A stretch of 64,000 bases of DNA, taken from assembly GCF_006345805.1 (NCBI RefSeq), contig NC_043010.1, positions 13,764,001-13,828,000 of the forward strand, read 5' to 3'. Below are positions 22,668 through 60,847 of this stretch, in pieces. Numbering within the stretch: the stretch's first letter is position 1; each line of letters begins with the position of its first letter. Under the pieces are notes generated by a model that was not told the origin of the DNA, made no database searches, and was given only the letters and a program-made list of their open reading frames with translations. The DNA comes from Octopus sinensis (taxonomy: Eukaryota). Position numbers and translations under genes: made by a program.

Positions 22668-23004
22668 CTTTAGTCGAGCAAATCGACCCCAGGACTTATT
22701 CTTTGTAAGCCCAGTACTTATTCTATCGGTCTCTTTTGCCGAACCGCTAAGTTACGGGGACGTAAACACACCAGCATCGGTTGTCAAGCAATGCTAGGGG
22801 GACAAACATACACACATATATATATATACATACATATATACGACGGGCTTCTTTCAGTTTCCGTCTACCAAATCCACTCACAAGGCTTTGGTCGGCCCGA
22901 GGCTATAGTAGAAGACACTTGCCCAAGATGCCACGCAGTGGGACTGAACCTGGAACCATGTGGTTGGTAAGCAAGCTACTTACCACACAGCCACTCCTGC
23001 GCCT
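22668..23004 (-). mobile_element. SINE-A lacking its 3' tail
   Basis: Homology; bracketed by 52-bp inverted repeats. Confidence 0.8.
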
Positions 23005-23210
23005 ATGTTAAATTATAAGACACCAAAAGAGAATGACTCTCCCCAGACACAACAGAACTCTTTATTGAATATGAATTATATTTGTATGAATCGCAATATC
23101 TGAAAACCTGAATTATTAAGGATTTCAAATACTAAATAAGAATTATTAATAGGGATTTCCTATCACTGAAGTGTTAATTCGTGGATTCCGTATTAAAAAA
23201 AAAAAAGTAC

Positions 23211-23303
23211 TGCCCCAGGTGAGGATCGAACTCACGACCTTCAGATGGCTCTTTCTTCGCATTGATTATGAGACTGACGCGCTGCCTACTGCGCTACCGA
23301 GGC
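23211..23303 (-). tRNA. tRNA-Met(CAT), elongator type, with 20-nt intron (copy 2)
   Basis: Near-identical to copy 1 (C67T giving G6:U67; one intron substitution); oligo-T terminator; about 85 bp of homologous upstream flank. Confidence 0.92.
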
Positions 23304-23934
23304 GCTTAGAAAGTATTCGTTCTAGTATGGTATTTATGTAATTATTTCAGCCTTTAACCGACAATCACACTGTCGACGGCTATCCATGCACACACATATA
23401 TGTACATATACACATTCATACTTGCTTGCACATAGACACACTGCTCTCTCTCACTCACATACATCCACACCCACACGTACAAGGTAGAAGAGGTAGTATA
23501 ATCAAAATGCTTTGCGATTTTGGCTAGTCGTGCTCAGTTCATATCCAGCCGACGTCAACTTTGTTTTTCAGCCATTCCGGTTCGATAAAATATAGTACCA
23601 GTCAAGCACTAGGGTCGAAGTAAGCGATTTTTTCCCCTCCCTTCAAAATCTGCCAGCCCTGTGCCACAATTTGAAGCCATTATACGTTCTGAGTTCAAAT
23701 TCCGCTTTGGCTGTCATCCTTTTAGGGTCGATAAAATAAGTACCAGTTGAGAACTGGGGCAAACGTAATTGACTTCCCTTCCCCTAAAATTGCTGGCCTT
23801 GTGCCAAAAATTGAAACCATTATTGTAATTATTATTATCATTATTATTATTTCGCCGAGGTCGACTTTGCCTTTCATCCTTTCGGGGTCGATGAATTAAG
23901 TACCAGTTGCGTACTGGGGTCGATCTAAACTGGT

Positions 23935-24290
23935 TGACAACGCGCAAACACGCGCCATCCTATCCAGGAGTATTCACGATGACCTCCAACTTATGCGCTA
24001 CATCATAGAGAGGGTGGGTAACTAAGCTGGCATGGGTGGGGCTCTGATCAATTTAGATCAATCTAAAGCCTTTGATAGGGTCGACCATCAATACTTGGCA
24101 GCTGTTCTCAAGGCAGCCGGTTTCGGTCCAGTTTTCCGCGGTTGGATTGCTGCTTTGTACAACGGCATCTACTCAGTTGTTCGGGTGAATGGTCACCTGT
24201 CGGAGCCATTCAGAATCTTGTGTTCGGTGCGTCAAGGTTGCCTTCTCTCCTCCCTTCTGTACGTACTGACCCTTGAGCCACTACTGCGGA
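23935..24290 (+). mobile_element. Tx1/L1-clade LINE ORF2 RT fragment (subfamily alpha, 5' part)
   Basis: Translation GGALINLDQSKAFDRVDHQYL...SVRQGCLLSSLLYVLTLEPLLRK; RT motifs; in-frame stop upstream. Confidence 0.85.
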
Positions 24291-24396
24291 AGTATCATAG
24301 CATGTGTATATGCATATGTATACACACATGCTATTATACAGACGACACTAACTGACATAGACATTTCGTTAACAATTTATATAAAAAAAAAAGTAC

Positions 24397-24489
24397 TGCC
24401 CCGGGTGAGGATCGAACTCACGACCTTCAGATGGCTCTTTCTTCGCATTGATTATGAGACTGACGCGCTGCCTACTGCGCTACCGAGGC
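24397..24489 (-). tRNA. tRNA-Met(CAT), elongator type, with 20-nt intron (copy 3, embedded in a LINE)
   Basis: Exons identical to copy 1, intron as copy 2; oligo-T terminator; about 50 bp of homologous upstream flank, then LINE sequence resumes. Confidence 0.92.
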
Positions 24490-24540
24490 GCTTAGGAAGT
24501 AGTTATTGTAGTATAGTATTTGGTATTTATGCAATTATTT

Positions 24541-26097
24541 CAGGCATATAGACCTGATTCGAGAAACACTACAGGAATATGAAGCGGTAACAGGAGCTAA
24601 AATTAATGCAGAAAAGTCAGTGGGCTTGCAACTCGGCACCTGGAGAGGCAAGTTCATGACGTCCAGCAGCGTGATGGGGCGCTCAACAGACGGTACCGTT
24701 ACGTTGCTCGGAGTTTGGTTTGGTCCGGATTCCCAGCTGAAGAACTGGGACAAAGTGATGAGCAGGGTAGCCATTCTCACCCAGAAATGGGCCGAGAGAA
24801 AGCTGTCCCTGAAAGGTCGGGCGGAGGTGGCGAATGCGACCATCGCATCCGTCATCTATTACCGCTTGACAGTCGTCCCTTGCCCTGTTTGCTGGTTGAC
24901 CAAGCTGGTGCGCTTACTCTTCCGCTTTCTGTGGAAGGATCAGGTTCCACTGGTCAGGTGCTCCATCTGCTGTCAACAGCTGCTGAATGGAGGGCTGGGC
25001 ATGCCGTGGTTACTGATGCGCAGACAAGCGCTCAGGTTGCGGCATCTCCAGCATTTCCTTGACAGTGAGCAGGTGTGGCCACCGTTTGTAAGGGACACTT
25101 TTCTACAGTTTGTCTCTTTGACTGAGCTGCAATCCTGGATTAGACGTAGACCGAGGAGGGGCGCTTGGCACCTCGAGTGACGTCAAGCGCTCACAGCCCT
25201 CCGCCTGACGGGTAATGCTGTCGATGGTAGTTCTACTCTAACGTTCTATAGAGGGCTAGTGAAAGGAAAGTGCGACGACGTTCTCGGGGTAACTCTGGGT
25301 GTCGATGAAGATCAACTAACCGGTCTGTTTCGGAGAACTTTCGGGCCAGGGCCTATGGATAACTTGCAGAAATCCCTTGCCTGGCAGTGCTACTGAGGGG
25401 CGCTGCCTGTTGGAGATAAACTTTACAGACACGGAAGTGCCGTCAGCCGGGCCAGCTCGAAGTGCGCCCAGAACGATGAAACCGTTCTGCACGCCCTAGT
25501 CCAGTGCCCGAGTATTGCTGACCTGTGGGTTTATGTTGAACACCTGCTGTCGCGTGTAGGATGAATCCGGCTATCTTCTGAATCCATTGTGAAAATTTCC
25601 CCGCCACCCTCGTTTGGCCGGGAGGCGCAGGCAACTTTTATTTGTCTAGTGGCTGTAGCAAAAGAGGTAGTATGGTGGATCCGTTTGAAAGGGCCAAAGA
25701 CAGACATTTTCCTCTTTGGCCAAACCTTCATCAACTTTTTCAAGAGAAACTTGAAAAGGAAGTTGCGGTTGGAGAGGGAAGTGTTGCCTTGTAGCAAGTT
25801 TTTTGAAAGGTGGGTGAATGTTGGAAGAATGGCTAGTGTGAAAGGACCAGTTCTGAGCGTACACCTGTAAAAAAAAGTAGAAGGGCTTTTGCTCTGTTGT
25901 TCAGGCACCCGTGGCTTTTGTGGGTTTTTCCACGAGGACCTTAAAACGCCTCTTCTATTGGGAGTTTAATTTGTTCCCCTTTTTAATTACATTATATACA
26001 CGCGAAAACCCATTGCATCGTCCTGTTTTTGTCTTTAATGTTGCTGCATGTCTTTTAATGTTTTGTATCTGAGCCCTTGAGGCCAATAAAAGAATAA
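24541..26097 (+). mobile_element. Tx1/L1-clade LINE, RT C-terminus to 3' end (subfamily alpha), decayed
   Basis: LSLKGRAEVAN, FLWK, GGLGMP and C-x2-C...HALVQC zinc-knuckle-like motifs; stops; ends GCCCTTGAGGCCAATAAAAGAAT then (ATT)n. Confidence 0.85.
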
Positions 26098-26127
26098 ATT
26101 ATTATTATTATTATTACTACTACTAGA

Positions 26128-26700
26128 AAGGCGGCAAGCTGGCAGAAGCGTTAGCACGCCGGGCGAAATGCGTAGCCGTATTTCGTCTGCCGTTACGTTC
26201 TGAGTTCAAATTCCGCCGGGGTCGACTTTGCCTTTCATCCTTTCGGGGTCGATTAAATAAGTACCAGTTACGCACTGGGGTCGATATAATCGACTTAATC
26301 TGTTTGTCTGTCTGTCCTTGTTTGTCCTCTCTGTGTTTAGCCCCTTGTGGGTAGTAAAGAAATAAGTGTTTCGTCTGCCGTTACGTTCTGAGTTCAAATT
26401 CCGCCGAGGTCGACTTTGCCTTTCATCCTTTCGGGGTCGATAAATTAAGTACCAGTTACGTACTTGGGTCGATATAATCGACTTAATCTGTTTGTCTGTC
26501 CTTGTTTGTCCTCTCTGTGTTTAGACCCTTGTGGGTAGTAAATAAATAGAAATAGGTATTTCGTCTGTCTTCACATTTTGAGTTCATATTCTGCCGAGGT
26601 CGATTTTGCCTTTCATCCTTTCGGGGTCAATGAAATAAGTACCCGTTACACACCCCAAATTTCAGGTTTTGTGCATATAGTAGAAAGGATTATTGTTACT
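26128..26700 (+). mobile_element. SINE-B tandem array (head + 2 units + remainder of an older B' copy)
   Basis: Junctions at 26364 and 26554; last unit carries a different tail. Confidence 0.8.
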
Positions 26701-27028
26701 AGAAGATAGAAGAGGAAAAGATATAGTGGATGATGCTGATCTAGAGTAGGAAGGCGCAACAAGGGCGGTCCACTCGGGGCGATGCTTTTTCACAGGTGGC
26801 ATTTTTGGGGTCTGCTGCATAATCTTGTACAAGAGGGGTGGGGCAGCGGAGATGCAAACTCAAAGGCTATTTTGGGCTAGCTACACAACTGAAGGGGAGA
26901 AGCTGAGGTAGATAGTACAGAGGAGCATATGCCGATGTAGTTGCAATAAAAAAAAAGAAAAGAAAACCTAGAGTGGACAGCACATCTGTGAGTTAATGGA
27001 TAGAACCTTTTCAAATCATCTGTATATT

Positions 27029-27250
27029 TATTTCTTTATTACCCACAAGGGGCCAAACATAGAGGGGACAAACAAGAACAGACAAACGGATTAAGTCGAC
27101 CCCAGTGTGTAACTAGTACTTAATTTATCAACCCCGAAAGGATGAAAGGCAAAGTCGACCCTGGCGGAATTTGAACTCGGAACGTAACGGCAGACGAAAT
27201 ACGGCTACGCATTTCGCCCGGCGTGCTAACGGTTCTGCCAGCTCGCCACC
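27029..27250 (-). mobile_element. SINE-B, full length
   Basis: Head, body and tail present. Confidence 0.8.
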
Positions 27251-27451
27251 TTGTGTTAGATGTTAATTAGCTTGAAGTATGAATGTATTAGTGGCAGTAT
27301 ACCATAAATAGATATTGGGCAGAACTCCAATATGGAGATGGTATGAAAACAAATCAAGTTTTTCTTTCCTTCAGATAATCGTCTGCACTTTCCATTGGCA
27401 GCTGTTGTTTTGCCCTAAGTCAGCCATATCGCTACGACAGCATTGTCCAGT

Positions 27452-28068: not shown

Positions 28069-28437
28069 TATTTCTTTACTACCCACAAGGGGCTAAACAC
28101 AGAGGGGACAAACAAGGACAGACAAACGGATTAAATCGATTACATCGACCCCAGTGCGTAACTGGTACTTAATTTATCGACCCCGAAACGATGAAAGGCA
28201 AAGTCGACCTCGGCGGAATTTGAACTCGGAACGTAAAGACAGGCGAAATACCTATTTCTTTACTACCCACAAGGGGCTAAACACCGAGGGAGCAAACAAG
28301 GACAGACAAACGGATTAAGTCGATCACATCGACCCCAGTGCATAACTGGTACTTAATTTATCGACCCCGAAAGGATGCGCACAAGGGGCTAAACATAGAG
28401 GAGACAAACAAGGACAGACAAACGGATTAAATCGATT
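28069..28437 (-). mobile_element. SINE-B partial tandem array
   Basis: Internal junction at 28252/28253. Confidence 0.8.
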
Positions 28438-28602: not shown

Positions 28603-28989
28603 GTGGAGGCGCAATGGCCCAGTGGTTAGGGCAGCGGATTCGCGGTCGTAGGATCGCGGTTTCGATTCCCAGACCGGGCGTTGTGAGTGTTTATTGAGCG
28701 AAAGCACCTAAAGCTCCACGAGGCTCCGGCAGGGGTGGTGGTGATCCCTGCTGTACTCTTTCACCACAACTTTCTCTCACTCTTACTTCCTGTTTCTGTT
28801 GTACCTGTATTTCAAAGGGCCGGCCTTGTCACTCTCTGTGTCACGCTGAATATCCCCGAGAACTACGTTAAGGGTACATGTGTCTGTGGAGTGCTCAGCC
28901 ACTTACACGTTAATTTCACGAGCAGGCTGTTCCGTTGATTCGGATCAACCGGAACCCTCGTCGTCGTAACCGACGGAGTGCTTCCATTC
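28603..28989 (+). mobile_element. SINE-C, full length, 16-bp TSD
   Basis: tRNA-like head TGGCCCAGTGGTTAGGGC...GGTTTCGATTCC; TSD CACTACAGAAAAATGA at 28586-28601 and 28990-29005. Confidence 0.88.
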
Positions 28990-29877
28990 CACTACAGAAA
29001 AATGAGCTTTTTGTGTTTGTTTACTGCCATCGTCCGTAATCGTTTTAAAGTCATTAAAGAAAACAGAGAGGTCGATGAACTTTTCCCAGTACGTTTAAGG
29101 TCACGAGATTCTTTCAAATCATTAAGTTTATAATTATACATAGGTGATAATGAGGACTCTATAGTGTAATTAGCAACACAGTCACCTGGCGTGTTTTAAT
29201 TATAACTTCGTGCTTTTCTAATTATGACTGTTTTCTATTTCAGAAAAAACAGAAATTATCTACTAAATAAATGTTTAGAGATAGCGTGAGAAGGTCTCTC
29301 AGTAATATCATTCTAAAGAATGTTGCAGCTTTCATTCGACTTGAACAACACACGAATTGATTACTGTCAAGTACTGTTATTTTTATCCTTTCTTTTTTAA
29401 TTTTTTGCCTAAAGTTGATCATTCATGAATTCCTGTTATTTTATGTGTTTTTGTTATTATTTTAAATCTAAAAACGGTGCCAATTCCGACCAATTTACGT
29501 TGCGTAGTAAGACGATAGCTTCTCAGTCACGTGGTTTTTGGGTTCAGTCCAATTGCATGGGAAACTTGAGTTACACACTATCTAAAACCAGGAAGGTCAT
29601 ACTATATTAAATTGTCATAGACGCACATTCAGTTGCTTCGGGTAGTTGGGACTCGATAGCCTTGACTGGGTAGCCCAACTAGGAGAAAGAAACTCCAATT
29701 TCAAACCTCCGCTGCCTTACGGCAAGACCCCCTCCTGGGGAAGGCTAAGGGAGTAAACCCCGACAGAAAATCCGGAGCTGGAGTCCCTAATACTATAGTC
29801 CCAATACTTTAATGCCCTATAAGTGAATTTGGTGTACAGAAATTGTGAAGCATATATATATATATATATATATATAT

Positions 29878-30188
29878 CACCACCATCACGTGACCGACCA
29901 GGCTATCAGATGTTGCTACACATCGCTGGTCACAATGCGCTTCGCATTGTTTTGGCCTTCAAATGACGCCACCCCACTGGCTAAGCGAGCAGGCCAACAG
30001 AAGAAAGAGTGAGAGAAAGTTGTGGCGAAAGAGTACAGCAGGGATCGCCACCACCCACTGCCGGAGCGTCGTGGAGCTTTTTAGGTGTTTTCGCTCAATA
30101 AACACTCACAACGACCGGTCTGAAAATCGAAACCGCGATCATACGACCGCGAGTCCGCTACCCTAACCACTGGGCCATTGCGCCTCCA
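29878..30188 (-). mobile_element. SINE-C head with alternative tail 3
   Basis: Shares head and TTTCTCTCACTCTT, then diverges. Confidence 0.7.
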
Positions 30189-34610: not shown

Positions 34611-34848
34611 TATTTCTTTACTGCCCACAAGGAGCTAAACACAAAGCCCAAAGCCCAAACAAGGACAGACAAAGGGATTAAGTCGATTCCATCGACCCCA
34701 GTGCGTAACTGGTACTTAATTTATCGACCCTGAAAGGATGAAAGGCAAAGTCGACCTCGGCGGAATTTGAACTCAGAACGTAGCGGCAGCGAAATACGGC
34801 TACGCATTTCGCCCGGCGTGCAACCGTTTCTGCCAGCTCGCCGCCTTC
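34611..34848 (-). mobile_element. SINE-B, full length
   Basis: Head, body and tail present. Confidence 0.8.
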
Positions 34849-35243
34849 TATTCCTAAAAAAAAAAAATTATAGAAATTAATGTAATGAGATCGATGCTAC
34901 AAAGAGAGCAAATATGTTAATGAGATCTCTGTTTTTCCTAAGTGAGTGAACGTGTAACTAATATCCTTGTTACAATGAGAACAATGGCTCAAATGATACC
35001 CTCGACATTCACAAAGTAAATGAGATACCTGCTACAAAATCAGTAACTATGTTCAAAGAGAGCAACTATGCGGAGAATTTCACTGCCATTTAAAGAGTAA
35101 CTAAATACGATCTGTATTAAAAAGAGATATTTACTTGGAGCGAAGAAAGAAATGCAAATGGTGTACCCAGCCATCTGGCAGGACATTACATATCTAGCCA
35201 GAGGGAAGAAGTTTGGAGCCATCGTGGTGAGGTTCAAGAGGAA

Positions 35244-35627
35244 GGAAGCACTCCGTCGGTCACGACGACGAGGGTTCCGTTGATCCGAATCAACGGAACA
35301 GCCTGCTCATGAAATTAACGTGTAAGTGGCTGAGCACTCCACAGACACGTGCACCCTTAACGTAGTTCTCGGGGATATTCAGCGTGACACAGAGAGTGAC
35401 AAGGCCGGCCCTTTGAAATACAGGTACAACAGAAGCAGGAAGTAAGAGTGAGAGAAAGTTGTGGTGAAAGAGTACAGCAGGGATCACCACCATCCCCTGC
35501 CGGAGCCTCGTGGAGCTTTTAGGTGTTTTCGCTCAATAAACACTCACAACGCCCGGTCTGGGAATCGAAACCGCGATCCTACGACCGCGAATCCGCTGCC
35601 CTAACCACTGGGCCATTGCGCCTCCAC
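35244..35627 (-). mobile_element. SINE-C
   Basis: Full-length homology. Confidence 0.85.
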
Positions 35628-35944
35628 GAAGTTCAAGAACGCAGAAACAGCACAGGGACACTCTGTAGTGTCATTAGAGTCACAAGACACATTATTGATC
35701 CCGGTTTGCACGGGAGTGAGAACATCTAGCGGTTCTAGACTGGGGTCCATATGACCCTTGGTGTTCATATAAGATTTTGTGGGGTTCATGAAAGCAAAGT
35801 AGTAACTTGGGGATTCATGGTAGTATTTTAAAGGGTCCGTGGAAAATTTTACTTTCATATGTCTATATTGCAAGAAACAGCTAGGTTTATTTCTCTGGTG
35901 TTTTACATAGTTTAAAATGTTTCCTGCCACTGAAATATGTTCTC

Positions 35945-38668
35945 ATAGAGAATAGGAGATGGTCTAGTTAAGAAACTAGAAGAAGCCTGGAGGACTGGTA
36001 ATGCGGACCAAGCGAGGGTGAAAAGACTGGAGTTAAACCAGCATCTTGAAGCCCAACACATGGGAAGTATTGCCAGAGCTAAGTTACGTGCAATGGGAAG
36101 TGAAGGAATCAAGGCCGCTGGATGGGTCCGGGTGGTGGAAGCTCGGCAAGGAAATAGTTCCACTATTCGGTCTTTGACGAATCAAAATGGTGTCTTGGTA
36201 AACGAACCCGAGAAAATGTGTGAGGCCTTTCGGGAGTACTTCGCCCAGCTGTTCGGGGGTGACGGCAGTCCTGGTGGTGGGAGAGCCCTCGAGGACTTTC
36301 TTACCGGGCTGCCATGCCTCTCGGGGTCGGATGCGGAGTCTTGCGAAGGGTCAATCACGCCTGTGGAGGTGATGGAGGCTTTGGCCGACTGTAAATTAGG
36401 TAAGTCGCCGGGACTTGATGGTCTTCCGTACGAGCTGTATAAATGTATGCCAGACTTGTTCGGGCATCTACTGGCTGATATGTACGCGAACTGGCAACAG
36501 AATGGGTTTATCCCCAGATCTGTGCACCGGGAAGTAGTGACGTTGGTCAGAAAGGACCCGGACAAGGAGAACGTTATAGAGAATTTCAGGCCCATCACTC
36601 TGTTAAACGCAGAAGTTAAGATTTTGGCCAAGGTCTTAGGAAAAAGATTGGCGCGTGTTGCGAATGGTATAGTCGGGGAGTCACAGACATGTGCCATCCC
36701 AAGCAGAACCATTCAGGATACCCTCCATCTTATTCGCTATACCAGAGAGGGTTGGTAATAAATCTGGCAAAGGTGGGGCATTGGTACATTTAGACCAGTC
36801 TAAAGCTTTTGATAGGGTTGACCATCGATACTTAGCGACGGTGCTTGCGCGGTTCGGCCTGGGCTTTGGCTTCTTCAGGTGGTTTATCGCTTTGTACCAC
36901 AACATTGACTCGATAGTTCGGGTGAACGGTTTCCTTTCGAAGCCGTTCTGCATCAGACGCTCGGTTCGTCAAGGATGTCCGCTCTCACCACTTTTGTATG
37001 TGATGGCTCTCGATCCCCTACTGCGAAGGTTGAGTGGCATCCCGAGAGAACCAGGTCTAGATGAGCTTATTACGGCTTACGCGGATGATATCACTATCAG
37101 CGTAACCTCAGTAGCACGCCTACGTGAAGTGGGTAAGACTATTGAGGCTTACGAGGAGGTGGCAGGAGCAGAGATTAACCGGGAAAAGTCGGTCGGCTTG
37201 CAGCTCGGCACCTGGGTTGGCAAGTCGATGCCTTCAGACAGCGTTGTTGGGCGCTGGACGAAGGGACCGGTTAAGTTGCTGGGAGTTTGGTTTGGACCAG
37301 GCCTCCAGAGAGAGAAGAACTGGACGGAGGTATTGAGCAGGGTGGCTGCAGTAGTCAAGACCTGGTCTTGGCGGTGGCTATCCCTGAAAGGGAGGGCGGA
37401 GGTGGCCAATGTGTTTATCACATCGGTCATTACCTACCGCCTGACCGTCGTGCCCTGTCCGGATTCGTGGTTGATCAGCTCTTTCGCTTTTTGTGGAAGG
37501 GCAGGTCCCCACTTGTGAAACGCTCTGTCTGCTGTCAAAAGCCTTTAAAGGGAGGTTTAGGGATGACTTGGTTAATGATGCGCAGGCATGCGTTGAGGTT
37601 GAAGCACCTCTGGATTCTCCTGGATAGTGAACGGGTGTGGTCTCCGCTGGCAAGACAAATGTTCCCCGAGTTCAAAAGTTTTTACGAACAGGAAGCCTGG
37701 TGTTCTCGTAGACCGAGGTCGAGTGAATGGCATAAAGAGTGCCGTAAGGCCCTCTTGCTATTCCGACGCTCGGACAACGCCAGCGGTGGGGGTTCCACAC
37801 GGATTTTATATAGTGGGTTGGTAGAGTCTGAATGCGACGATGGCCTTGGGGGAGACTCTACATCTCGGATTTATTCAACTGGACAGCCTGTTTTACCGTA
37901 CATTCGGGTTGAGCACGTTGGACAACTTCCAAAATTCCTTAACCTAGCAATGCTACAGAGGTGCCTTGCCCGTTTGGGATAAGCTTGCAAGACACGGTAA
38001 GCGTCAGTCGCCGACCTGTCCAAGATGCGGGGGGGGGTGCGGACAGGGAACCCATCCATCACGCTATTGTTCAGTGTCCGGAGATATCTGAAATGTGGGC
38101 TTATGCTGAACACCTGTTGTCCGGCGAAGGAAGAGTACCGCTGTTAACTGAGTCAATTATAAAAATTGCCCCACCGGGAGTTTTAACGAACGAAGGTAAG
38201 AATTGTTTTCTCACGGTTGTAGCAATAGCGAAAGAGGCAGCATGGAAGACTAGGATAAAAGGAATTTAGACAGGCAACTTTATCTCTGGCCACAATTTAC
38301 GATAATTTTTTTCTTTTCATTTGAAAAGGAAGGTGTGGCTGGAGAAGAGATGTCTATCGGAGTGTACGTTCCAAAAGAGATGGAAGCATGTTGCACGAGT
38401 GTTGTGCGTGCAAGGAACCGTGTAAACAGACGGGGAAAAAAGAACAAAAAAAGATACCAGCGATAGATCGGGGCTTGTGGGGTCGGAGCGCGGCCTGGTT
38501 GTCGCTTCATTTGTGTTGTCCCTGTATTGTTAATTTCATTCGATTTTCTATATATTGTATTTAATTTTTAAAAGTCGCATTTTATGTAAAATCATACCGC
38601 ATTACTGATCCCATCAGTTGTTCTGTCCATTTCTATGTTTAGCCCCCCCGGTGGGCAATAAAGAAATT
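35945..38668 (+). mobile_element. 5'-truncated Tx1/L1-clade LINE (subfamily beta), frameshifted ORF2
   Basis: KSPGLDGLPYE, NFRPITLLN, DQSKAFDRVDH, QGCPLSP, AYADD, LSLKGRAEV motifs across three frames; 3' end TTTAGCCCCCCCGGTGGGCAATAAAGAAAT. Confidence 0.9.
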
Positions 38669-39177
38669 GGTATTTCATCAGTCTATGTTCAGAGTTCAAA
38701 TTCCGCCGAAGTCGACTTTGCGTTTCATCCTTTCGGAGTCGATAAATTAAGTACCTATTGCGTACTGGGGTTGATCTAATCGACTGGTGCCCCTAAAAAT
38801 CTTGGGCCTTGTGCCTAGAGTAGAAAGGAATCGTAAGCACGTCGGACAAAATGCTTAGAAGCATTTCGTCTGTCCTTTCTTACCGTACGCTCTGAGTTCA
38901 AATTCAACTGAGGTCAACTTTGCCTTTCATCCTTCCGGAGTCGATAAAAGTACTGGGTCGATGAAATCGACTCAACCCTCCTTACCAAAATTCAGGCCTT
39001 GTGCCTATAGAAGAAACGATTATTTATAGCTCTCTCTGCTTCGAGATCCACCGCTTACCCATCCCAAAGAATTGTTTCACGTTATTTCGAGGTTTATAAA
39101 TTCTTATGACATCATTTATGTCTATCTTCGTAGGAATTTGCTTCATTTCCATATTTTACATCACATAGACCCAATTT

Positions 39178-39611
39178 GGATCTTTTCGGTTTGAACGGCA
39201 GGTTTTTCTAGCGGTGTCATATGAAATTGTCACCCATAATTATGACCCTAGTATCGATCTATCGATCTGCTTAGGGTTAGGGTTAGTTAGGGTTATGGTT
39301 AGGGTTAGGAGGGGGGGGAAGGGTATCTTTTTTTTCTTCACAAATGTAAATAAACCCAATCTGTTTCTTAAACGAGGGACATATTCATACGGCACAGAAT
39401 GTTTTCACCTCAATAGACGTCATTGATTGGTTGAAATTTCAGAAATTGAAGAAAAAACAACAACAAATATCTTACAAACTATAGAATTTTCTCAATAAAG
39501 CCAAGAGAAAAAGATGTTTTATAAACACATTTCAGCAGTATACGAAGTTTAAAAGTGTTTAGTTACGTGGAAATTATTTTTAAAAAACTGCCGTTCAAAC
39601 CGAAAAGATCC
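39178..39611. mobile_element. TIR MITE with internal (TTAGGG)n
   Basis: Both TIRs present. Confidence 0.85.
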
Positions 39612-40278: not shown

Positions 40279-40561
40279 ACACTGTCTGCTTTGCAGACTT
40301 CATTCATAAAATTCTTTTTAGCTGACTTCACCGAGACAAAAGCAGTAATGTTAGAAAGAGTTAGTCTACCGCAGTCATTATTTTCTAACATGGGTCGTCA
40401 CAAGCCTGAACGAACGCACACAAGCAGACGCACACGAAGTCGATGTAGCTGTAGAGTGCACCCGTCTATTTCCATATTATAGTGTATGTATGTGTGGTCT
40501 TGGTGCGCGCGCGTGTGTTTGTGTGTGCGTGCGTGCGTGTGTGTGTGTATGTGTGCATATA

Positions 40562-41304
40562 TATTTCTTTACTACCCACAAGGGGCTAAACACCGAGGGA
40601 GCAAACAAAGACAGACAAACGGATCAAGTCGATCACATCGACCCCAGTGCGTAACTGGTACTTAATTTATCGACCCCGAAAGGATGAAAGGCAAAGTCGA
40701 CCTCGGCGGAATTTGAACTCAGAACACAGCGGCAGACGAAATACCTATTTCTTTACTACCCACAAGGGGCCAAACACAGAGGGGACAAACAAAGACAGAC
40801 AAACGGATCAAGTCGATCACATCGACCCCAGTGCGTAACTGCTACTTAATTTATCGACCCCGAAAGGATGAAAGGCAAAGTCGACCTCGGCGGAATTTGA
40901 ACTCAGAACGTAGCGGCAGACGAAATACCTATTTCTTTACTACCCACAAGGGGCTAAACACAGAGGGGACAAACAAGGACAGACAAACGGATTAAGTCGT
41001 TTACATCGACCCCAGTGCGTAACTGGTACTTAATTTATCGACCCCGAAAGGACGAAAGGCAAAGTCGACCTCGGCGGAATTTGAACTCAGAACGTAACGG
41101 CAGACGAAATACCTATTTCTTTACTACCCACAAGGGGCTAAACACAGAGGGGACAAACAAGGACAGACAAACGGATTAAGTCGATTACATCGACCCCAGT
41201 GTGTAACTGGTACTTATTTAATCGACCCCCGAAAGGATGAAAGGCAAAGTCGACCTCGGCGGAATTTGAACTCAGAACGTAACGGCGTGCTAACGATTCT
41301 GCCA
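40562..41304 (-). mobile_element. SINE-B tandem array, 4 units, 184-bp period
   Basis: Unit 3' ends at 40562, 40746, 40930 and 41114; partial head at 41282-41304. Confidence 0.88.
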
Positions 41305-41476
41305 TATATGTGTGTGTGTGTATATATGTATGCATACATGGCCTGGCTGCGTGGTAAGAAGTTTGCTTCCTAATCACATGTTTCTGAGTTCAGTCCCTCT
41401 GCGTGGAACTTTGGCAAGTATCTTCTATTATAGCCCTGGGCCGACCAAAACTCCCGTGAATGGATTTGGCAGCCGT

Positions 41477-41587
<111 letters not shown>

Positions 41588-42053: not shown

Positions 42054-42354
42054 ACGCTATCTACTCCTCTTCTTTTGTCTTCACTCTCTCACTACCTCAC
42101 TACTTCATCAAATCAGTATACTTTCCCCTAGCCTTTCTCTCGTACACACACACACACACACACACATTTATATATCAAAATATATAAAATCTTAAGATGG
42201 CACTCGAAAATAAATACCAAAATAAATACATGCACATATTTGGATATATTTTTCTCCGGACACGAATTCGTGTTTCCAATTATGAAACGAACTCGTGTTT
42301 CTAATAACCCCACATTTAAAATAAAGCGTACAGAAAACAGATTGGATGGATGAT

Positions 42355-42735
42355 GGAAGCACTCCGTCGGTCACGACGAGGGTTCCGGTTGATCCGAATC
42401 AACAGAACAGCCTGCTCGTGAAATTAACGTGTAAGTGGCTGAGCACTCCACAGACACGTGTACCCTTAACGTAGTTCTCGGGGATATTCACCGTGACACA
42501 GAGAGTGACAAGGCCGGCCCTTTGAAATACAGGTACAACAGAAACAGGAAGTAAGAGTGAGAGAAAGTTGTGGTGAAAGAGTACAGCAGGGATCACCACC
42601 ATCCCCTGCCGGAGTTCGTGGTGCTTTTAGGTGTTTTCGCTCAATAAACACTCACAACGCCCGGTCTGGGAATCGAAACCGCGATCCTATGACCGCGAGT
42701 CCGCTGCCCTAACCACTGGGCCATTGCGCCTCCAC
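42355..42735 (-). mobile_element. SINE-C
   Basis: Full-length homology; (TCCA)n-like tail. Confidence 0.85.
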
Positions 42736-44150: not shown

Positions 44151-46675
44151 CCAGTCTGTATATAATCAGTGTATATCTCTTAATGATTCTATCTCTTTTC
44201 TGTTTTTCACTGATGATAATACCAGACTTAAACGGAGTGGCGGGAGGGGCTGTTACAAAAACACGAATTCTTATCCGGGGGAATATTTATAAATATATGC
44301 ATGTATTTGTTTTAGTGCTTAATTTCGAATGTCATCTTATCTTAGCTATCTTTATATTTTAATTATATATGTATGCACACACAAAGGCACACACACAAAC
44401 ATAAATATATATGCATATGTATTTATTTATGTGTATATATATATACATAGATATATGTATATGCGTGTGAGTGTGCGTGAGAGTGTCTACGCGTATATAT
44501 ATGCGCACGCTTATACGTTGATGATCTAGATTGAAAGAAATTATATTAACTACAGAAGATAATTGCTGAAACTGTCAGCGACGAGTACCATAGCAACACC
44601 ACTGTAGAACGTATTCTATCGACTCCCAATCCTGTGCTGAATCTGTGGGGAAGGTGCATTACACGAAAGCACCAGGAAAACGCCTTACAATTAGATATTT
44701 GCATTAACGCTCTACAGAGTGTCATTCGGGTGCAAATTTAAAAGAATTACAAGAGACCAGACCGACATAACAAGCTGGCGCTGACAAATCTTGTAGACAA
44801 AAATAGAAGTACTGACTTGGCTAAAAATGATAGGTCTTCTGCTTGCCTAAACACGCACGAACAGTTTAATGTGTATACGTATTTGAGCATGTCCCTTTTC
44901 TTTCATTTTAGTCATCGGACCTCGGATTTTAGTCGATCAAACCGGTCCTCTGCCCACCACCAGTACTCATTCTTTTTTACTCTATGCACAAGGCCCGACA
45001 TTTTTGGAGATGAGGCCAGTCAATTGGATCGACTCCATTATGCAACTGGTACTTAATTAATCGACTCTGAAAGGATGAAAGATCCGAAATTTTGGGGGAG
45101 GGGGCCAGTAAATTAGATCGACTCCACTGGTACTTAATTTATCGACCCCGAAAGGATAAAAGACAAAGTCGACCTCGGCGGAATTTGAACTCAGAACGTA
45201 ACGACAGACGAAATATCGCTAAGCATTTCGCCCGGCGTGCTGACGATTTAACAATCAATATTGACAATGGTGATGGTTGGTGCTGCCAACTGTTAATCTT
45301 AATGAAAATTCCTCGATTTCGTAAAAACAAACAAACGAATAAACACGACTAAAAACAATACCTCCGCCTTCGCTAAGGCGGAGGCAATAAGTACTGGCGA
45401 TGGAAGGCGGCGAGCTGGCAGAATCGTTAGTACGCCGGGCGAAATGCTTAGTGGTATTTCGTCTGCCGCTACATTCTGAGTTCAAATTCCGCCGAGGTTG
45501 ATTTTGCCTTTCATCGTTTCGGGGTCGATTAAATAAGTACCAGTTACGCACTGGAGTCGATATAATCAACTTAATCCGTTTGTCTGTCCTTGTGTGTCCT
45601 TCCCGCGAAACTGCTGGCCTTGTGCCAAAATTTGAAGCCAATATTGATTGCTAAATAAAACCAGGCAAAATGCATAGAAGCATTTCGTCCGTCTTTACGT
45701 TCTGCGTTCAAATTCCGCTAAGGTTGATTTTTGCCTTTCATCCTTTTGGGGTCCATAAAATAAGTATCACTGGGGGATCGATACAATCGTCTTAACCACC
45801 ACCCCCGCTCTCGAAATAGCCAGCCTAGGCGTGTCTATGGAGTAAGAACTTTGCTTCCCAACTACATGGTTCCGGGTTCAATCGTACCGTGTGACACCGT
45901 GGGCAAGTAGGTGTCTTCTTCCATAACTCCTGGGTCGGAAAGGCCTTTCACATAGGGTAGACACACTGTGGTCAGTTTATGGGTTTCATCCCCTCTTCTC
46001 ATCATAACTGGAATGGATAATATATTTTAAACCAGCATTGATTGCTAAATAATCTCACAAGACCTCACCACCATTCCTTCAAGCCGTATCAAATGACGTC
46101 AGGATTGATTATGATCTTATTGTTTGTTCTGAGCGAGTGACCAATACTCATGATCTTTAAATAACACCCCCCCCCCCTCCAACACACGTACACGCACGCA
46201 CACCTCCGGGAATAATGAGATCAATATGGCAGATGTTCAGCTCAGTTTGACATCTGTAACTCGATATTCAATCTACAGAAAAGTTTCTACGTGGTAGTTC
46301 AATCTACGAGAAATAACAGCCAATTTTTCTCTCATCTCACACGCTACCGTCTTTACAAAATCTTTTCTACTCTAGGCATACGGCCCGAAATTTTGGGCGA
46401 GGAGGAGGGCAGTCGATTAGATCGATCCCAGTACGCAACTGGTACTTAATTTTTCGACCCCGAAACGATGAAAGGCAAAGTCGACTAAGCATTTCTCCCG
46501 GCATGCTAACGTTTCTGCCAGCTCGCCGCCTTTGTCTTTAACAAATAATACAAAAAGGAAAAGCATATTGGAGAAAATAGTCATAGATACATTAAAAAAA
46601 CCCAAATATGGCACGATCACGGCTGGAATAAGTCATAAGTCACGGCTGGAATAGTCATAAGCCTGCTCAGTTCTT

Positions 46676-48373: not shown

Positions 48374-48591
48374 CAGGCGGCGAGCTGGCAGAAACGCTAG
48401 CACGCCGGGCGAAATGCGTAGCCGTATTTCGTCTGCCGTTACGTTCTGAGTTCAAATTCCACCGAGGTCGACTTTGCCTTTCATCCTTTCGGGGTCAATA
48501 AATTAAGTACCAGTTACGCACTGGGGTCGATGTAATCGACTTAATCCGTTTGTCTGTCCTTGTTTGTCCCCTTGTGGGTAGTAAAGAAATA
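48374..48591 (+). mobile_element. SINE-B, full length
   Basis: Head, body and tail; older B'-type copies also at about 23.5, 38.7, 45.0, 46.4 and 53.2 kb. Confidence 0.8.
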
Positions 48592-49211: not shown

Positions 49212-49664
49212 GGATCTTTTCGGTTTGAACGGCAGTTTTTTCTAGCGGTGTCATATGAAATTGTCACCCATAATTATGACCCTAGTATCGATCTCTTGCA
49301 TTTCAATCTGTATTAGGGTTAGGGTTAGAGTTAGGGTTAGTTAGGGTTAGGGTTAGGGTTAGGGGTGGGGCGAAGGGTATCTTTTTTTCTTCACAAATGT
49401 AAATAAACCCAATCTGTTTCTTAAATGAGGGACATATTCATACGGCACAGAATTTTTTTTTACCTCAATAGACGTCATTGATTGGTTGAAATTGCAGAAA
49501 TTGAAGAAAAAAAAACAACAAATATCTTACAAACTATAGAATTTTCTCAATAAAGCCAAGAGAAAAAGATGTTTTATAAACACATTCTACCAGTATACGA
49601 AGTTTAAAAGTGTTCAGTTACCTAGAAATTATGTTAAAAACTGCCGTTCAAACCGAAAAGATCC
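49212..49664. mobile_element. TIR MITE with perfect 8-bp TSD
   Basis: TSD CTGCCTTC at 49204-49211 and 49665-49672. Confidence 0.9.
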
Positions 49665-50413
49665 CTGCCTTCTAATTAATCAACAACAGAGACACCAAAC
49701 ATTACCATAGGCACAGGCCTGGCGGTGTGGTAAGAAACGTGCTTTCTAATCACATGGTTCCGGGTTCAGTCTCTCTGTGTGACACCTTGGGTCTTCTACT
49801 GTAACCCCAGCGCGACCAAAGCTTTGAGAGTCGACTTGGTAGACGGAAACTGATAGAAACCCGTCGTGTGCGTGCATGTGCGTGTGTAAGTGTGTGTGTG
49901 TGTGTATGTGCGCACGCGCGCGTGTGTGTGTGTCTGAGATTGTCCCTCACCACCGCTTGACAACCGGTGTTTGTGTGTTTCCGTTCCCATAACTTAGCAT
50001 TTCGGCAAAAAGAGAGACCAATAGAATAAGTACCTGACTTAACAGAAAATAAATACTGGGGTCGATTCATTCGACTAAAAGTTCTTCGGGGCGGTGCCCC
50101 AGCATGGCCGCAATCTAATGTCTAAAACAAGTAAAAGATAAAAGATTGGCAGTAAGGATTAGTCAAGGACGTCACTCTAAGTCCTCATCAGTCTTTCCAT
50201 ACCATCGACGCATCACCAACACCATCCACCAAAGGAGTCTCTACGGGGTCTCTCAATCTGCTAGAAATAGCTGTCGAATTCCTGACTTAACCTTTTGCCT
50301 GTCCCAAGCATGTTCGTAAGTTTGTCGTAAACATCCATGCTTGTTTGCAGACTTTTAGTAAGCCCTTGTTTCGACCCCTTACGATTATGAATGACCATCG
50401 GATTGCACCTAGG

Positions 50414-50801
50414 GATGGAAGCACTCCGTCGGTTACGACGACGAGGGTTCCGGTTGATCCGAATCAACGGAACAGCCTGCTCGTGAAATTAACGTATAAG
50501 TGGCTGAGCACTCCACAGACACGTGCACACTTAATGTAGTTCTCGGGGATATTCAGCGTGACACAGAGAGTGACAAGGCCGGTCCCTTGAAATACAGGTA
50601 CAACAGAAACAGGAAGTAAGAGTGAGAGAAAGTTGTGGTGAAAGAGTACAGCAGGGATCACCACCATCCCCTGCCGGAGCCTCGTGGAGCTTTTAGGTGT
50701 TTTCACTCAATAAACACTCACAACGCCCGGTCTGGGAATCGAAACCGTGATCCTATGACCGCGAGTCCGCTGCCCTAACCACTGGGCCATTGCGCCTCCT
50801 T
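50414..50801 (-). mobile_element. SINE-C nested in another SINE, 13-bp TSD
   Basis: TSD GATTGCACCTAGG at 50401-50413 and 50802-50814; host SINE head at about 51107. Confidence 0.88.
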
Positions 50802-52190: not shown

Positions 52191-52505
52191 AGCGAACAGT
52201 CTTCGTCCCAGAGCTCGCAAGATGGGAGAAGTCCAAAACATGATCCTTTGCTATTCGTAAGACCCGCAGAAGAGAAAGCAGGTCAACCCCCGACACCGAG
52301 AACATCGACGGATGGATGAATGCGCATCCAGGCTCAGCGGTTGCGTAGGAAGTCGGGGGACAAGAAACAGGAAGAAAGAGTGAGAGAAAGTTGGAGCGAA
52401 AGAGTACAACAGGGTTCGCCACCCCCACCCCCTGCCAGAGCCTCGTGGAGCTTTAGGTGTTTTCGCTCAATAAACACACACAATCGAAACCGCGATCCTC
52501 CGACC
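52190..52505 (-). mobile_element. SINE-C body with alternative tail 4, head truncated
   Basis: Shares body to CTCTTTCTTCCTGTTTC, then diverges. Confidence 0.65.
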
Positions 52506-53647: not shown

Positions 53648-53967
53648 GTGAAGACGCCTGGCTTAGTGGTTAGGGTATTCGGGTCACGATCGTAAAGTCG
53701 TGAGTTCAATTCCTGGCGGCGAGTTATATCCTTGAGCAAGACACTGTATTTCACGTTGCTCCAGTCCACTCAGCTGGCAAAAATGAGTTGTACCTGTATT
53801 TTAAAGGGCCGGCCTTGTCACACTCTGTGTCACGCTGAATCTCCCTGAAAACTACGTTAAGAGTACGCATGTCTGTGGAGGGCTCAGCCATTTGCCTGTT
53901 AATTTCACGAGCAGGCTATTCTGTTGATCGGATCAACTGGAACACTCATCGTCGTAACCGACGGAGA
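53648..53967 (+). mobile_element. Chimeric SINE: different tRNA head and CORE-like body with the SINE-C standard tail
   Basis: CCTTGAGCAAGACAC body, then TTGTACCTGTATTT...CCGACGGAG tail. Confidence 0.65.
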
Positions 53968-54191: not shown

Positions 54192-54644
54192 GGATCTTTT
54201 CGGTTTGAACGGCAGTTTTTAACATAATTTCTAGGTAACTAAAAAATTTTAAACTTCGTATACTGCTGGAATGTGTTTATAAAACATCTTTTTCTCTTGG
54301 CTTTATTGAGAAAATTTTATAGTTTGTAAGATATTTGTTGTTGTTTTCTTCAATTTCTGCAATTTCAACCAATCAATGACGTCCATTGAGGTAAACAACA
54401 TTCTGTGCCGTATGAATATGTCCCTCGTTTAAGAAACAGATTGGGTTTATTTACATTTGTGAAGAAAAAAGATACCCTCCCCCCACCCCTAACCCTAACC
54501 CTAACTAACCCTAACTAACCCTAACTCTAACCCTAACCCTAATACAGATTGAAATGCAATAGATCGATACTAGGATCATAATTATGGGTGACAATTTCAT
54601 ATGACACCGCTAGAAAAAAACTGCTATTCAAACCGAAAAGATCC
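54192..54644. mobile_element. TIR MITE with perfect 8-bp TSD
   Basis: TSD GGGAAAAT at 54184-54191 and 54645-54652. Confidence 0.9.
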
Positions 54645-57016: not shown

Positions 57017-57771
57017 ATTCTGGTTATATTGGCCACAAGGGCTAATATACATCAAAAACATGCAGGGACAAACATAGGATGATAAAAACAAAAGGTTTTG
57101 CAAAAAGAAATGGTCCGTGTAAACATTATATAACAGCAAAAAATGTAACAAGTAAAAAAAACCTCCCAATAGGGGAAGGCGCTTTGAAAGGTTACTCATC
57201 CAAGATTGTAGCTCGGTCAAAGAGACGAGCTGTGGAAAGGAGAGCCTGACGAACGGCGACCACACCTGCTCACTGTCCAGGAAACGCTTGAGATGCTGTA
57301 GCCTGAGCGCACGTCTGAGCATCAGCAACCACGGCATGCCCAGGCCTCTGTTCAGCGACTGTTGACACCAGATGGAGCGCCTGACCAGTGGTACCTGACC
57401 CTTCCACAGAAAGTCCAAGAGCAAGCGCACCAGCTTGATCAACCAGCGGCCGGGACAAGGGACAACAGTCAAGCAGTAATAGATGACGGATGCGATGTAC
57501 GCATTCGCCACCTCCGCTCGACCTTTCAGAGACATCTTCCTCTCGGCCCATTTCTGGGTGAGATTAGCCACCCCGTTTGTCACCTCGTCCCAGTTTTTCT
57601 CCACCTGGAGGTCCGGTCCGAACCAGACCCCGAGCAGTTTAACGGGACCGTCTGTCCAGCGCCCCATAACGCTGTTGGATGGCATGGACTTGCCCCTCCA
57701 AGTGCCCAGTTGCAAGCCCACCGACTTTTACGCGTTAATTTTCGCACCTGTCACCGCTTCGTACTCGCTTA
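57017..57771 (-). mobile_element. Tx1/L1-clade LINE fragment (alpha): RT C-terminal part fused directly to 3' UTR
   Basis: GLQLGTWRGK...KGRAEVANAYIASVIYY homologous to the 24.6-kb copy; jumps to 3' UTR near 57190; (ATT)n beyond the 3' end. Confidence 0.8.
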
Positions 57772-58214: not shown

Positions 58215-58390
58215 ACTTTCAAAGCACCTCCCCCTATTGGGAGTTCTTTCTAATTGTTATATTTTTAGCTGTTATTTGAATGTTTACACGGACTTTTCTT
58301 TTTCGCAAAACCCTTTGTACTCTTCGTCCTGTGTTGGTCCTTACATGTTTCTTGATCTATGTTAGCCCTTGTGGCCAATAAAACCAGAAT
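58215..58390 (+). mobile_element. Tx1-like 3' UTR-only module
   Basis: Homologous to the reverse complement of 57017-57190; ends GGCCAATAAAACCAGAAT then (TTA)n. Confidence 0.7.
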
Positions 58391-58411: not shown

Positions 58412-58996
58412 CTGTCACGTATAGGACGGATCCGGCTATCAGCTGAATCCATAGTGAAGATTGCCCCGCCGACCTCCTTTAACAAGGCGGGCAAGGCCGT
58501 TTTCCTGTGCCTAGTAGCTGTGGCGAAAGAGGTTGTATGGTGGACCCGTTTGAAAGGGCTAAAGTCAGACACTTTCCTCTTTGGTCAAGGCCTCATCAAC
58601 TTTTTCAAGTTTCACTTGAAAAGGAAGATGAGGTTAGAGAGGAGAGTGCTGTCCGATGGCAAGTTTTCTGAAAGGTGGGTGAATTGTGCAAGAATGGCCA
58701 GTATAAATGGACCAGTTCTCAGGTTTCGCCTGTGATTGAAAAAGGTATTAAAAAAGGAGAAAGGGGCTCTCTACCCCCCTTTTGACCAGGCTCCCGTGGC
58801 TTTTATGGGTTTTTCCACGTGAGACCTTTTCTTTTTTTCGAAGCGTCTCCTCTATTGGGAGTTTTTCGTTGTTATACTGCTTTTTACTCGTTTTTTTTTT
58901 TCACAAACGGTCAAAACCCTTTGTAACCTTTCGTCCTGTTTTGTCCCTTTATGTTTTCCAATCATGTGTGTCAGCCCTTGTGGCCAATAAAAAGAA
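58412..58996 (+). mobile_element. 5'-truncated Tx1-like LINE (alpha) 3' end
   Basis: KIAPPTSF...FLCLVAVAKEVVWWTRLKG homologous to 25.6 kb; flanked by (TTA)n on both sides. Confidence 0.8.
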
Positions 58997-59289
58997 TTAA
59001 TTATTATTATTATTATTATTAATCACTGGGGTCGATTTGTTCGAATAAAAATTTATTCAAGGCGATGCCCAAGCATGGCCGCTATCTGATGACTGAAACA
59101 AGTAAAAGATAAAAAAATACAAGATCTAATCAGCCAACCAGACAGACAGACCAATAGACAAGGCAGACAGGCGGACAGAGAGACAAACCAATAAGCAGAC
59201 ATACAAACAGACCAATAGACAAGGAGACAGACAAATCAACAGCCAGACAGACAGACTCACTGGCCGACAGACAGACAGACGGACGGACG

Positions 59290-60793: not shown

Positions 60794-60847
<54 letters not shown>

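Follow-up and report, generated by a model that had tools for sequence, protein, structure and literature searches.

It has long been asked how transposable elements give rise to satellites, and the usual answer is only "unequal crossing-over." The question is raised by a tandem array, A40, at positions 40562-41304 of a 64-kb window of the Octopus sinensis genome (GCA_006345805.1, chromosome CM016872.1, from about 13,764,001), the repeated unit of which is part of a short interspersed element (SINE) that we call SINE-B. An original prediction from the letters of this window held that SINE-B appears to insert into its own head and thereby to build 184-bp tandem arrays. Our analysis of the window and of about 110 kb of other octopus loci indicates that tails are joined to heads at one exact spot, most likely because the cutting motif of a partner long interspersed element (LINE) lies there. 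Insertion at this site followed by homology-based resolution is the route by which we tentatively propose that the arrays were built.

Tandem Repeats Finder reported a period of 184 bp at 40562-41286, with 3.9 copies, 96% matches, no indels, and a score of 1301, and the exact 20-mer AAAGAAATAGGTATTTCGTC occurs three times in A40, at 40735, 40919, and 41103, confirming the predicted 184-bp arrangement. The array lies on the minus strand and comprises three complete 184-bp units, a first unit, and a 22-nt head remnant. The remnant (41283-41304; positions 13 to 34 of the element, GGCAGAATCGTTAGCACGCCG) bears an A-box-like motif and is joined via GCCG microhomology to unit 1 (41114-41286), the 5'-most, which carries the marker TTAAATAAG. 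Deleted between the two are positions 35 to 64, the whole of the hairpin described below including its GGTAT site. Unit 2 (40930-41113) is 98.9% identical to the consensus; unit 3 (40746-40929) has four variants in common with unit 4, including one seen in these two units only; and unit 4 (40562-40745), the 3'-most, spans positions 50 to 233, ends in the tail AAAGAAATA, and is followed by the flank TATATG. Each of the A40 junctions reads ...GTAGTAAAGAAATA joined to GGTATTTCGTC. The junctions are thus as predicted, but the head is not intact, as it begins at position 13 and unit 1 lacks positions 35 to 64. The flanks at 40540-40561, a (TG)n/(TA)n microsatellite that starts with TATAT on the element strand, and at 41305-41327 probably represent the two copies of a target site duplication (TSD), their match being imperfect and in a microsatellite context.

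Full-length SINE-B measures about 233 nt, composed of a head (positions 1 to 49) and 184 nt from G50 to the tail AAAGAAATA. Folding of the consensus RNA yielded a head with an acceptor-like stem and a long 13-bp hairpin, in which positions 33 to 45 pair with 50 to 62 around the loop UAGC (-16.5 kcal/mol in isolation). G50, where the units begin, is the first base of the 3' arm of that hairpin. Deletions are tied to the hairpin in two copies, A40 unit 1, where the missing segment lies between two GCCG repeats, and the copy at 46485-46532, which lacks positions 49 to 93. Two motifs of a putative RNA polymerase III (Pol III) promoter, one A-box-like (TGGCAGAAACG) and one B-box-like (GTTCAAATTCC), both matched by eye to the textbook consensus, stand on either side of the junction site, and the A-box part is carried only by the 5'-most unit of an array. 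The predicted location of the GGTAT/CGTAT site between A and B boxes therefore stands for box-like motifs, but the tRNA-like identity of the head does not, since ARAGORN called no tRNA in the SINE-B heads and Rfam matched none of its tRNA models at E ≤ 10. A TTTT terminator is absent from the consensus unit; a C-to-T change converts GGTATTTCG into GGTATTTTG at 21811-21821 and 6775-6785 and creates a Pol III terminator-like TTTT just after the junction site. The tail closes with GAAATA, a hexamer whose reverse complement, TATTTC, stands at head positions 52 to 57. A palindrome GAAATA-GG-TATTTC is formed at every junction of tail and head, for example at 40732-40751, and the "TAT" of the general target motif introduced below is the complement of the last three bases of the RNA.

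The element has features of a SINE. It shares its 3' tail with a LINE, and copies at 6773, 34611, A21, and the O. vulgaris locus L004 are flanked by TSDs of variable sequence and 10 to 17 bp, none being visible at three copies. Its body may resemble the CORE central domain of CORE-SINEs, among them the octopus OR2 family (Ohshima and Okada 1994, as cited in PMC4758252). Scans of metagenome, bacterial-genome, and viral collections with the SINE tail or body returned chance 20- to 22-mers only and no cephalopod DNA.

BLAST of the unit against the window located about 17 SINE-B units, and the A40 junction, that is, the tail AAAGAAATA followed by GGTATTTCG at SINE position 50, recurs in three further arrays. 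All the junctions listed in the original prediction were recovered (21810, 26554, 28252, 40745, 40929, and 41113, with a variant AGTGT at 26364), together with an eighth that it had missed, where a LINE tail is joined to GGTATTTCATC at 38668/38669. The eight cases within 64 kb are of three kinds, B to B, B to B', and LINE to B', where B' denotes an older family that has head and body in common with SINE-B and ends in ...GCCTAGAGTAGAAAGGA(TTA)n. The unit following the junction reads GGTATTTTG at 21810/21811 and GGTATTTCGCC at 28252/28253, and at 26554/26555 an additional GAAATA precedes an older B' element. AGTGT at 26364/26365 is a later change, because the O. vulgaris junction still reads GGTAT there.

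Array A26 (26128-26554, plus strand) starts with a full B-type head (26128-26176), followed by unit 1 (26177-26364) and unit 2 (26365-26554, ending in the duplicated GAAATA). Downstream of it lies a B' remainder (26555-26702, plus strand), which runs from position 50 to its own (ATT)n-type tail and ends in ...TTACTAG; the whole composite stands between TSD copies of ...TTACTAG, where another LINE ends in its (ATT)n(ACT)n tail. Array A21 (21577-21916, plus strand) has a full head (21577-21625), unit 1 (21626-21810), and positions 50 to 155 of unit 2 (21811-21916), the latter cut by an old inversion. The other part of unit 2, positions 127 to 233 with tail and TSD, is now inverted at 20755-20861 on the minus strand. 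The TSD of A21, GGTATCAAAAGAGT, is found at 21560-21573 on the plus strand and at 20741-20754 on the minus strand. The inversion spans about 1.05 kb (20862-21916), and the pieces at 20833-20860 and 21889-21916 overlap by 28 bp with 100% identity; it predates the species split, because it is common to O. vulgaris. Array A28 (28069-28437, minus strand) begins with a fragment (28380-28437), continues with a unit that starts at column 60 (28253-28377), and ends in one full unit (28069-28252). It starts inside a unit with no head upstream, and it has TATATG on both sides, which may be a 6-bp TSD. Thus, the arrays are head-to-tail repeats of part of a SINE with a terminal unit that reaches the SINE terminus, as in the SINE-derived satellites (sSats) discussed below; satellite-like amplification was not observed in the window, where arrays have 2 to 4 units that differ by 3 to 10%.

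The sequence that follows tails outside arrays accounts for the position of the junction. We examined nine SINE-B tails outside arrays, eight in the window and one at L004. They are followed by GGTAT (twice), GATAT, AATAT, CATAT, TATAT (three times), and TATTT, i.e., by NRTAT in 8/9 cases against a background of 1.8% (P of about 1e-13). Those in the window include the full-length copies at 27029-27252 (minus strand, 3' flank AATAT), 34611-34847 (minus strand, 14-bp TSD, 3' flank TATAT), and 48375-48591 (plus strand, 3' flank TATTT), a 5'-truncated copy at 7937-8093 (minus strand, 3' flank GATAT), and a copy at 6773-6956 (plus strand) that has a 17-bp TSD and starts 2 nt before the junction site (GC/GGTAT). 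NRTAT belongs to the target and not to the element, because three or four clear TSDs hold it, among them GGTATCAAAAGAGT of array A21, GGTATTCTAG... of L004, and ATATCTTCTGTYCAATC of the copy at 6773. In the SINE-B consensus, NRTAT occurs only once on the two strands together, as GGTAT at position 50, and where the junction falls is thus a consequence of the target preferred by tails of this type. SINE-B tails that adjoin a head make up 7/16 in this one window, whose single LINE copy with this tail also sits at a head, to be compared with the >20% used as a criterion of target specificity for LINEs (PMC4494074). As judged from its sequence, the junction is of a site-specific, retrotransposition type, a complete tail followed by the target motif, and not a mere satellite period. 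The earlier view of the junctions as insertion-type is supported by the motif that they share with ordinary insertion sites, by the TSDs, and by the uniqueness of the motif in the element.

A candidate for the enzyme source lies in the same window. A 5'-truncated L1/Tx1-like LINE at about 35950-38668 (plus strand) contains reverse-transcriptase open reading frames (ORFs) at 36018-37982 that match Pfam RVT_1. It ends in ...TGTTTAGCCCCCCCGGTGGGCAATAAAGAAATT, which is the SINE-B tail, the last 40 or so nucleotides matching; because the tail is shared, this LINE family is the probable partner of SINE-B. Its end, ...AATAAAGAAATT, stands directly before the GGTAT of a B' head, exactly at position 50 (GGTATTTCATC). 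A partner-type LINE tail thus occupies the same position in an old B' head as SINE-B tails do in B and B' heads. The best solved relative of its reverse transcriptase is human L1 ORF2p (1.8e-15), R2 being weaker, and its homologues carry zf-RVT, which points to an L1-superfamily affinity. A LINE of this affinity may be a member of the Tx1 clade; that Tx1-clade LINEs are often sequence-specific, as had also been stated, agrees with the literature (PMC4494074). A search with the C-terminal ORF of the LINE found three distant matches, on very short contigs. On its 5' side, no head-like sequence was found in 34848-38668 and no ORFs upstream of about 35950, and a TSD sought at the 5' end yielded only a chance 8-mer common with the far flank. 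On its 3' side, the LINE continues into a chain of 5'-truncated elements on the plus strand, a B' element from position 50 (38669-38828) and a B'-like element from position 18 (38828-39021).

We then compared the ages of units, using CpG decay and the orthologous locus of O. vulgaris (L012, 94 to 97% identity), which reaches window position 24890 and then the first unit of A26. The comparison covers A21 and that unit. Over positions 50 to 148, CpG sites were lost in 0/18 cases in the two B units of A26 versus 5/9 in the B' remainder (p=0.0016, or p=0.007 without a possible family marker). On this measure the remainder is clearly older than the B units upstream of it, as had been predicted for the array at 26128. 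The head of A26 is B-type (GCGTAGCC), though its last element is the B' remainder. At A21, the inversion, the TSD, and unit 2 (1/106 and 1/121 differences) are common to both species, whereas the head differs at 4/49 positions and unit 1 at 16/185 plus one indel. Taken together, head and unit 1 show 20 substitutions and 1 indel in 234 bp (5 expected, P=4e-7), a divergence of 8.5% versus 2.1% in 2.5 kb of surroundings. They also carry different subfamily markers, TTAAATAAG/GATATAATCG/CCTCTCT in O. sinensis and TAAATTAAG/GATGTAATCG/CCCCTCT in O. vulgaris. This contrast in markers and divergence indicates that unit 2 was already present when the head and unit 1 were inserted or exchanged together, as one block.

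The mechanism that we tentatively favor, insertion at the head site with homology-based resolution, would proceed as follows. The LINE endonuclease would nick the bottom strand of a genomic head between positions 49 and 50, and reverse transcription of SINE-B RNA would start at the nick from the tail. The last 49 nt of the complementary DNA (cDNA) would be homologous to the DNA beside the nick, so that the cDNA could be incorporated as a flap, as in prime editing, with no need for another cut and with nothing duplicated or deleted. Each event would add exactly one 184-bp unit and renew the head, and a nick at an inner junction would convert the upstream unit instead. Read-through transcripts of arrays would carry GGUAUUUCG... 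after the tail and could anneal to the nicked head. Unequal exchange or gene conversion would alter the arrays further. Insertion with flap uptake would account for the fixed period, for the fact that no duplication lies within the arrays, for a B' remainder with a head of B type, and for the block-wise difference between species. In its strongest form, the proposal is of a natural counterpart to prime editing, in which the partner LINE cuts a motif in the SINE's own head, flap uptake dispenses with second-strand cleavage and renews the head with its putative promoter, a dispersed repeat becomes a growing array, and read-through transcripts guide further events; this stronger version we regard as possible but less likely than the general one. 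Unequal exchange or conversion clearly reshapes existing arrays, and template jumping and multimeric masters, two processes weighed below, probably contribute to some composites.

Several observations weigh against this mechanism. If tails were nested in preexisting heads, upstream head halves would be expected, and they are absent from the LINE-B'(50-)-B''(18-) chain (35950-39021) and from A28. The LINE copy is 5'-truncated, and the region of the predicted endonuclease is missing from it. Heads represent about 0.5% of the NRTAT sites of the window yet received 3 to 8 of 12 to 17 junction events (P≤3e-5), making head insertions about 50 to 90 times commoner than the motif predicts; such an excess is not explicable by a 4-base motif. 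It might arise because completion is far more efficient with homology, or because read-through transcripts anneal, but the annealing and flap steps invoked here are themselves conjectural. The replacement of the head and unit 1 at A21 could be ordinary ectopic gene conversion. The predicted seniority of 3' units holds for the A26 remainder and A21 unit 2, but not as a general divergence gradient, the 5'-to-3' difference in strictly defined private changes being a trend only (7/665 versus 16/736, p=0.14). The sample itself, one 64-kb window and about 110 kb of other octopus loci, is small.

The relationships among units cut both ways. Units of the same array differ by 5.3% on average, those of different arrays by 6.9%, and array units and dispersed copies by 8.5%; the lower value within arrays also counts against the mechanism, as do private variants common to neighbors (A40 units 3 and 4; A26 units 1 and 2) and, in O. 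vulgaris A21, three derived changes shared by units 1 and 2 where 0.15 were expected (P=5e-4). Such shared private variants point to local duplication or conversion. The nearest relatives of many units, however, are in other arrays, A40 unit 4 being closest to A28 unit 1 (2.4%), and the arrays are therefore not simple local amplifications. The 5' units of three arrays cluster together, all with TTAAATAAG, and inner units have TAAATTAAG; the order of units is not conserved, a GCTCCCTCGGTG variant being last in A40 and first in A28. The finding that the original prediction had named as damaging to itself, units more like one another within arrays than like dispersed copies, was thus made in part, in the 5.3% versus 6.9% and the shared private variants, while nearest neighbors are often elsewhere. 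Self-insertion primed at the head gains from the match of sites, from the LINE at the same head site, and from the ages of A26 and A21, and loses from the missing left halves and the shared private variants.

Could the junctions have arisen during reverse transcription rather than by insertion into a resident head? In template jumping, the reverse transcriptase would leave its template at the top of the hairpin (position 50) and resume on the 3' end of another SINE or LINE RNA, the array being integrated at once. The junction falls exactly at the boundary of hairpin loop and arm, the hairpin was skipped between GCCG repeats in A40 unit 1, and the deletion at 46485-46532 starts in the loop. The solitary copy at 6773, with a 17-bp TSD, starts 2 nt before the site, which suits jumping and speaks against insertion into a head, and the LINE-B'-B'' chain and 5'-truncated A28 without left halves raise no difficulty. 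Array sizes look geometric (5 singles; arrays of 2, 3, 2 to 3, and 4 units), heads, bodies, and tails occur in mosaic combinations in these SINE families, and there is no targeting problem. We nevertheless consider template jumping unlikely as the general explanation. It does not fit the age of the B' remainder in A26, which clearly exceeds that of the adjoining B units (p=0.0016), or an A21 unit 2 that is ancestral while the head and unit 1 differ between species. Frequent stops at position 50 predict many monomers starting there, and only 1/9 does. Chance would have to explain why the head site matches the genomic target motif, two GGTAT TSDs included, unless that motif stems from the choice of primer and not from cleavage. 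Alternatively, a few founder junctions may have spread as multimers, the Pol III transcript of a dimer or array whose head is intact running through several units, being retrotransposed as a block, and then undergoing 5' truncation and unequal exchange. The lack of a TTTT terminator in the consensus unit, the single sequence of all junctions, the mutual relationship of the TTAAATAAG-bearing 5' units of three arrays with TAAATTAAG in inner units, the truncation of A28 inside a unit, and TSDs around whole arrays are all in its favor. The B-B' and LINE-B' junctions, however, cannot be inherited from a B-B founder, and a site-specific process is therefore needed even then. Moreover, inner units of different arrays do not cluster, their order is not conserved (GCTCCCTCGGTG), and the 5' unit of O. 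vulgaris A21 belongs to another subfamily. Spread by multimers is in our judgment distinctly unlikely.

Satellite dynamics at the DNA level alone, i.e., chance duplication, unequal crossing-over, slippage, and ectopic conversion, with a junction formed without reverse transcription, would explain why units are closer within (5.3%) than between arrays (6.9%) and why neighbors have private variants in common in three arrays. The replacement of a whole element at A21 looks like SINE gene conversion, and unequal recombination has been offered for the squamate SINE-derived satellites (PMC10702118). Against this, every junction consists of a complete tail plus the LINE target motif, both in the LINE-B' and B-B' combinations and in the four arrays, whose loci are unrelated; its position is uniform across loci, and units of one array come from lineages common with other loci. 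These features make an origin without reverse transcription quite improbable. Rolling-circle reverse transcription of a circular 184-nt RNA would readily give a tandem arrangement of fixed period, and retrozyme-type elements have been reported in animals (10.64898/2026.07.22.740005). Neither strand of 40400-41500 gave a match to a hammerhead or other ribozyme at E≤1, within one array the units diverge by as much as 7% and do not all bear the same subfamily markers, and arrays begin with a normal head, so that a retrozyme-like origin appears highly improbable. A duplication through microhomology between 3' flank and head was also considered and rejected as the general origin; it is possible only where the flank is GGTAT (A21), the flanks of A40 and A28 being TATATG.

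The window contains further composites and repeats. B' elements form chains of their own, in which full-length units are joined via (ATT)n tails; three-copy B'-type chains occur in O. sinensis locus L005 (6024-6613 and 19836-20598) and are conserved in O. vulgaris locus L006. Heads, bodies, and tails have been shuffled among these families, and the mosaic at 45404-45800 combines a SINE-B head and body to column 147 with a tail of a third type (...TGCTGGCCTTGTGCCAAAATTTGAAGCC), after which comes a B'-like copy truncated at its 5' end. A second LINE (23929-26125), about 72% identical to the first, ends in ...GAGCCCTTGAGGCCAATAAAAGAATAA(ATT)5(ACT)3. Tails similar to its own, followed by (ATT)n, are found at 2465-2489, 57024-57051, 58358-58383, and 58965-58997, and it is likely, by its sequence, to be the partner LINE of SINEs that have (ATT)n tails. 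Another repeat, of some 390 bp (35240-35627, 28603-28990, 42349-42735, and 50413-50799; copies 93 to 97% alike) has partial copies at 30000-30188, 52363-52483, and 53787-53966. Its end resembles, in reverse complement, a tRNA-like head (...TGGCCCAGTGGTTAGGG...GGTTTCGATTCCC), GTTCAAGA flanks the copy at 35240, and the repeat probably represents a further young SINE family. ARAGORN made three 93-nt "tRNA-Tyr (ata)" calls on the minus strand (22086-22178, 23211-23303, and 24397-24489), which are copies (89 to 91%) of a repeat no shorter than 151 nt; the three stand at intervals of 1125 and 1186 bp, and one of them is inside the second LINE. They are likely SINE heads and not tRNA genes. Short interstitial runs of (TTAGGG)n/(CCCTAA)n are present at 39271-39309, 49313-49364, and 54487-54542, and a (GGT)n/(GTG)n microsatellite of about 1.4 kb at 59643-61104 shows a strong GC skew of 0.57.

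Comparison with O. vulgaris revealed other differences between the species. O. vulgaris is without 1.29 kb (24891-26183, versus L012 21300) that hold the 3' half of a LINE and the A26 head, the ends being joined at TTT microhomology, and it is without window 22556-23282 in the stretch of the "tRNA-Tyr" repeat. A segment of about 1.8 kb (14897-16733) is present in O. sinensis and absent from the O. vulgaris orthologue. A C2H2 zinc-finger gene at 11221-12723 has a single exon and encodes 500 amino acids with at least 8 fingers; the protein is identical in both species, and the surrounding DNA differs by 3 to 6%. A related zinc-finger gene lies on the ENA contig L010, where no SINE-B or B' was found. 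No conserved annotated protein was found between 26 and 64 kb of the window.

In these arrays, a founding junction can be linked to a defined biochemical event, a LINE target motif in a SINE head, and thereby offer a testable route from dispersed to tandem repeat. Octopus genomes are 11 to 12% SINE, and the process could therefore shape a sizeable part of the genome. If flap resolution is true, it would constitute a natural nick-primed, homology-resolved insertion without a double-strand break. In SINE gene conversion, in chimeric L1 insertions resolved on a resident copy, and in prime editing, a cDNA or flap replaces or extends a homologous resident sequence without a TSD. To our knowledge, none of the three adds a fixed sub-element unit repeatedly at a site set by the element's own head. 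In the literature on octopus SINE arrays and on this sequence, we found no description of a target in a SINE's own head that gives rise to sub-element units.

A close likeness in architecture is to the sSats of squamates, in which part of a SINE is repeated in tandem and the last unit is extended (Vassetzky et al. 2023, PMC10702118), for which unequal recombination or repeated insertion was suggested (PMC10702118). The octopus arrays resemble them in a terminal unit that reaches the SINE's own end, in their many loci, and in short arrays not yet homogenized (PMC10702118). Unlike those of squamates, whose boundaries vary between taxa and for which no link to a LINE target is reported, the octopus boundary is one fixed nucleotide; it agrees with a target motif, and the probable partner LINE is found there as well. 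Head-to-tail multimers formed by insertion next to or into an earlier tail are seen in the B' chains and in the jerboa Dip/B1 multimers (as cited in PMC10702118); those consist of complete elements, whereas SINE-B units start at position 50. The proposed annealing is reminiscent of R2/R1-type integration, in which target sequence read through into the RNA aids precision (cited in PMC4494074). A target-bearing RNA could likewise anneal to the nicked target, a step predicted for SINE-B from the structure of its arrays. A parallel in function is with Tx1-clade LINEs, relatives of which target small-RNA genes, transposons, or microsatellites (Kojima 2015, PMC4494074). As among target-specific LINEs of the Tx1 clade and the SINEs associated with them (PMC4494074, also citing Kojima and Fujiwara 2004), LINE and SINE share a target preference, and tandem SINEU-3 copies were explained by sequential insertion at the same, regenerated target (PMC4494074). 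In the Tx1-clade cases, the target is another sequence (Mariner-N4, U2, 5S, or (TC)n) and full-length copies are separated by a TSD (PMC4494074); SINE-B differs in having the target in its own head, partial units, and no visible duplication between them.

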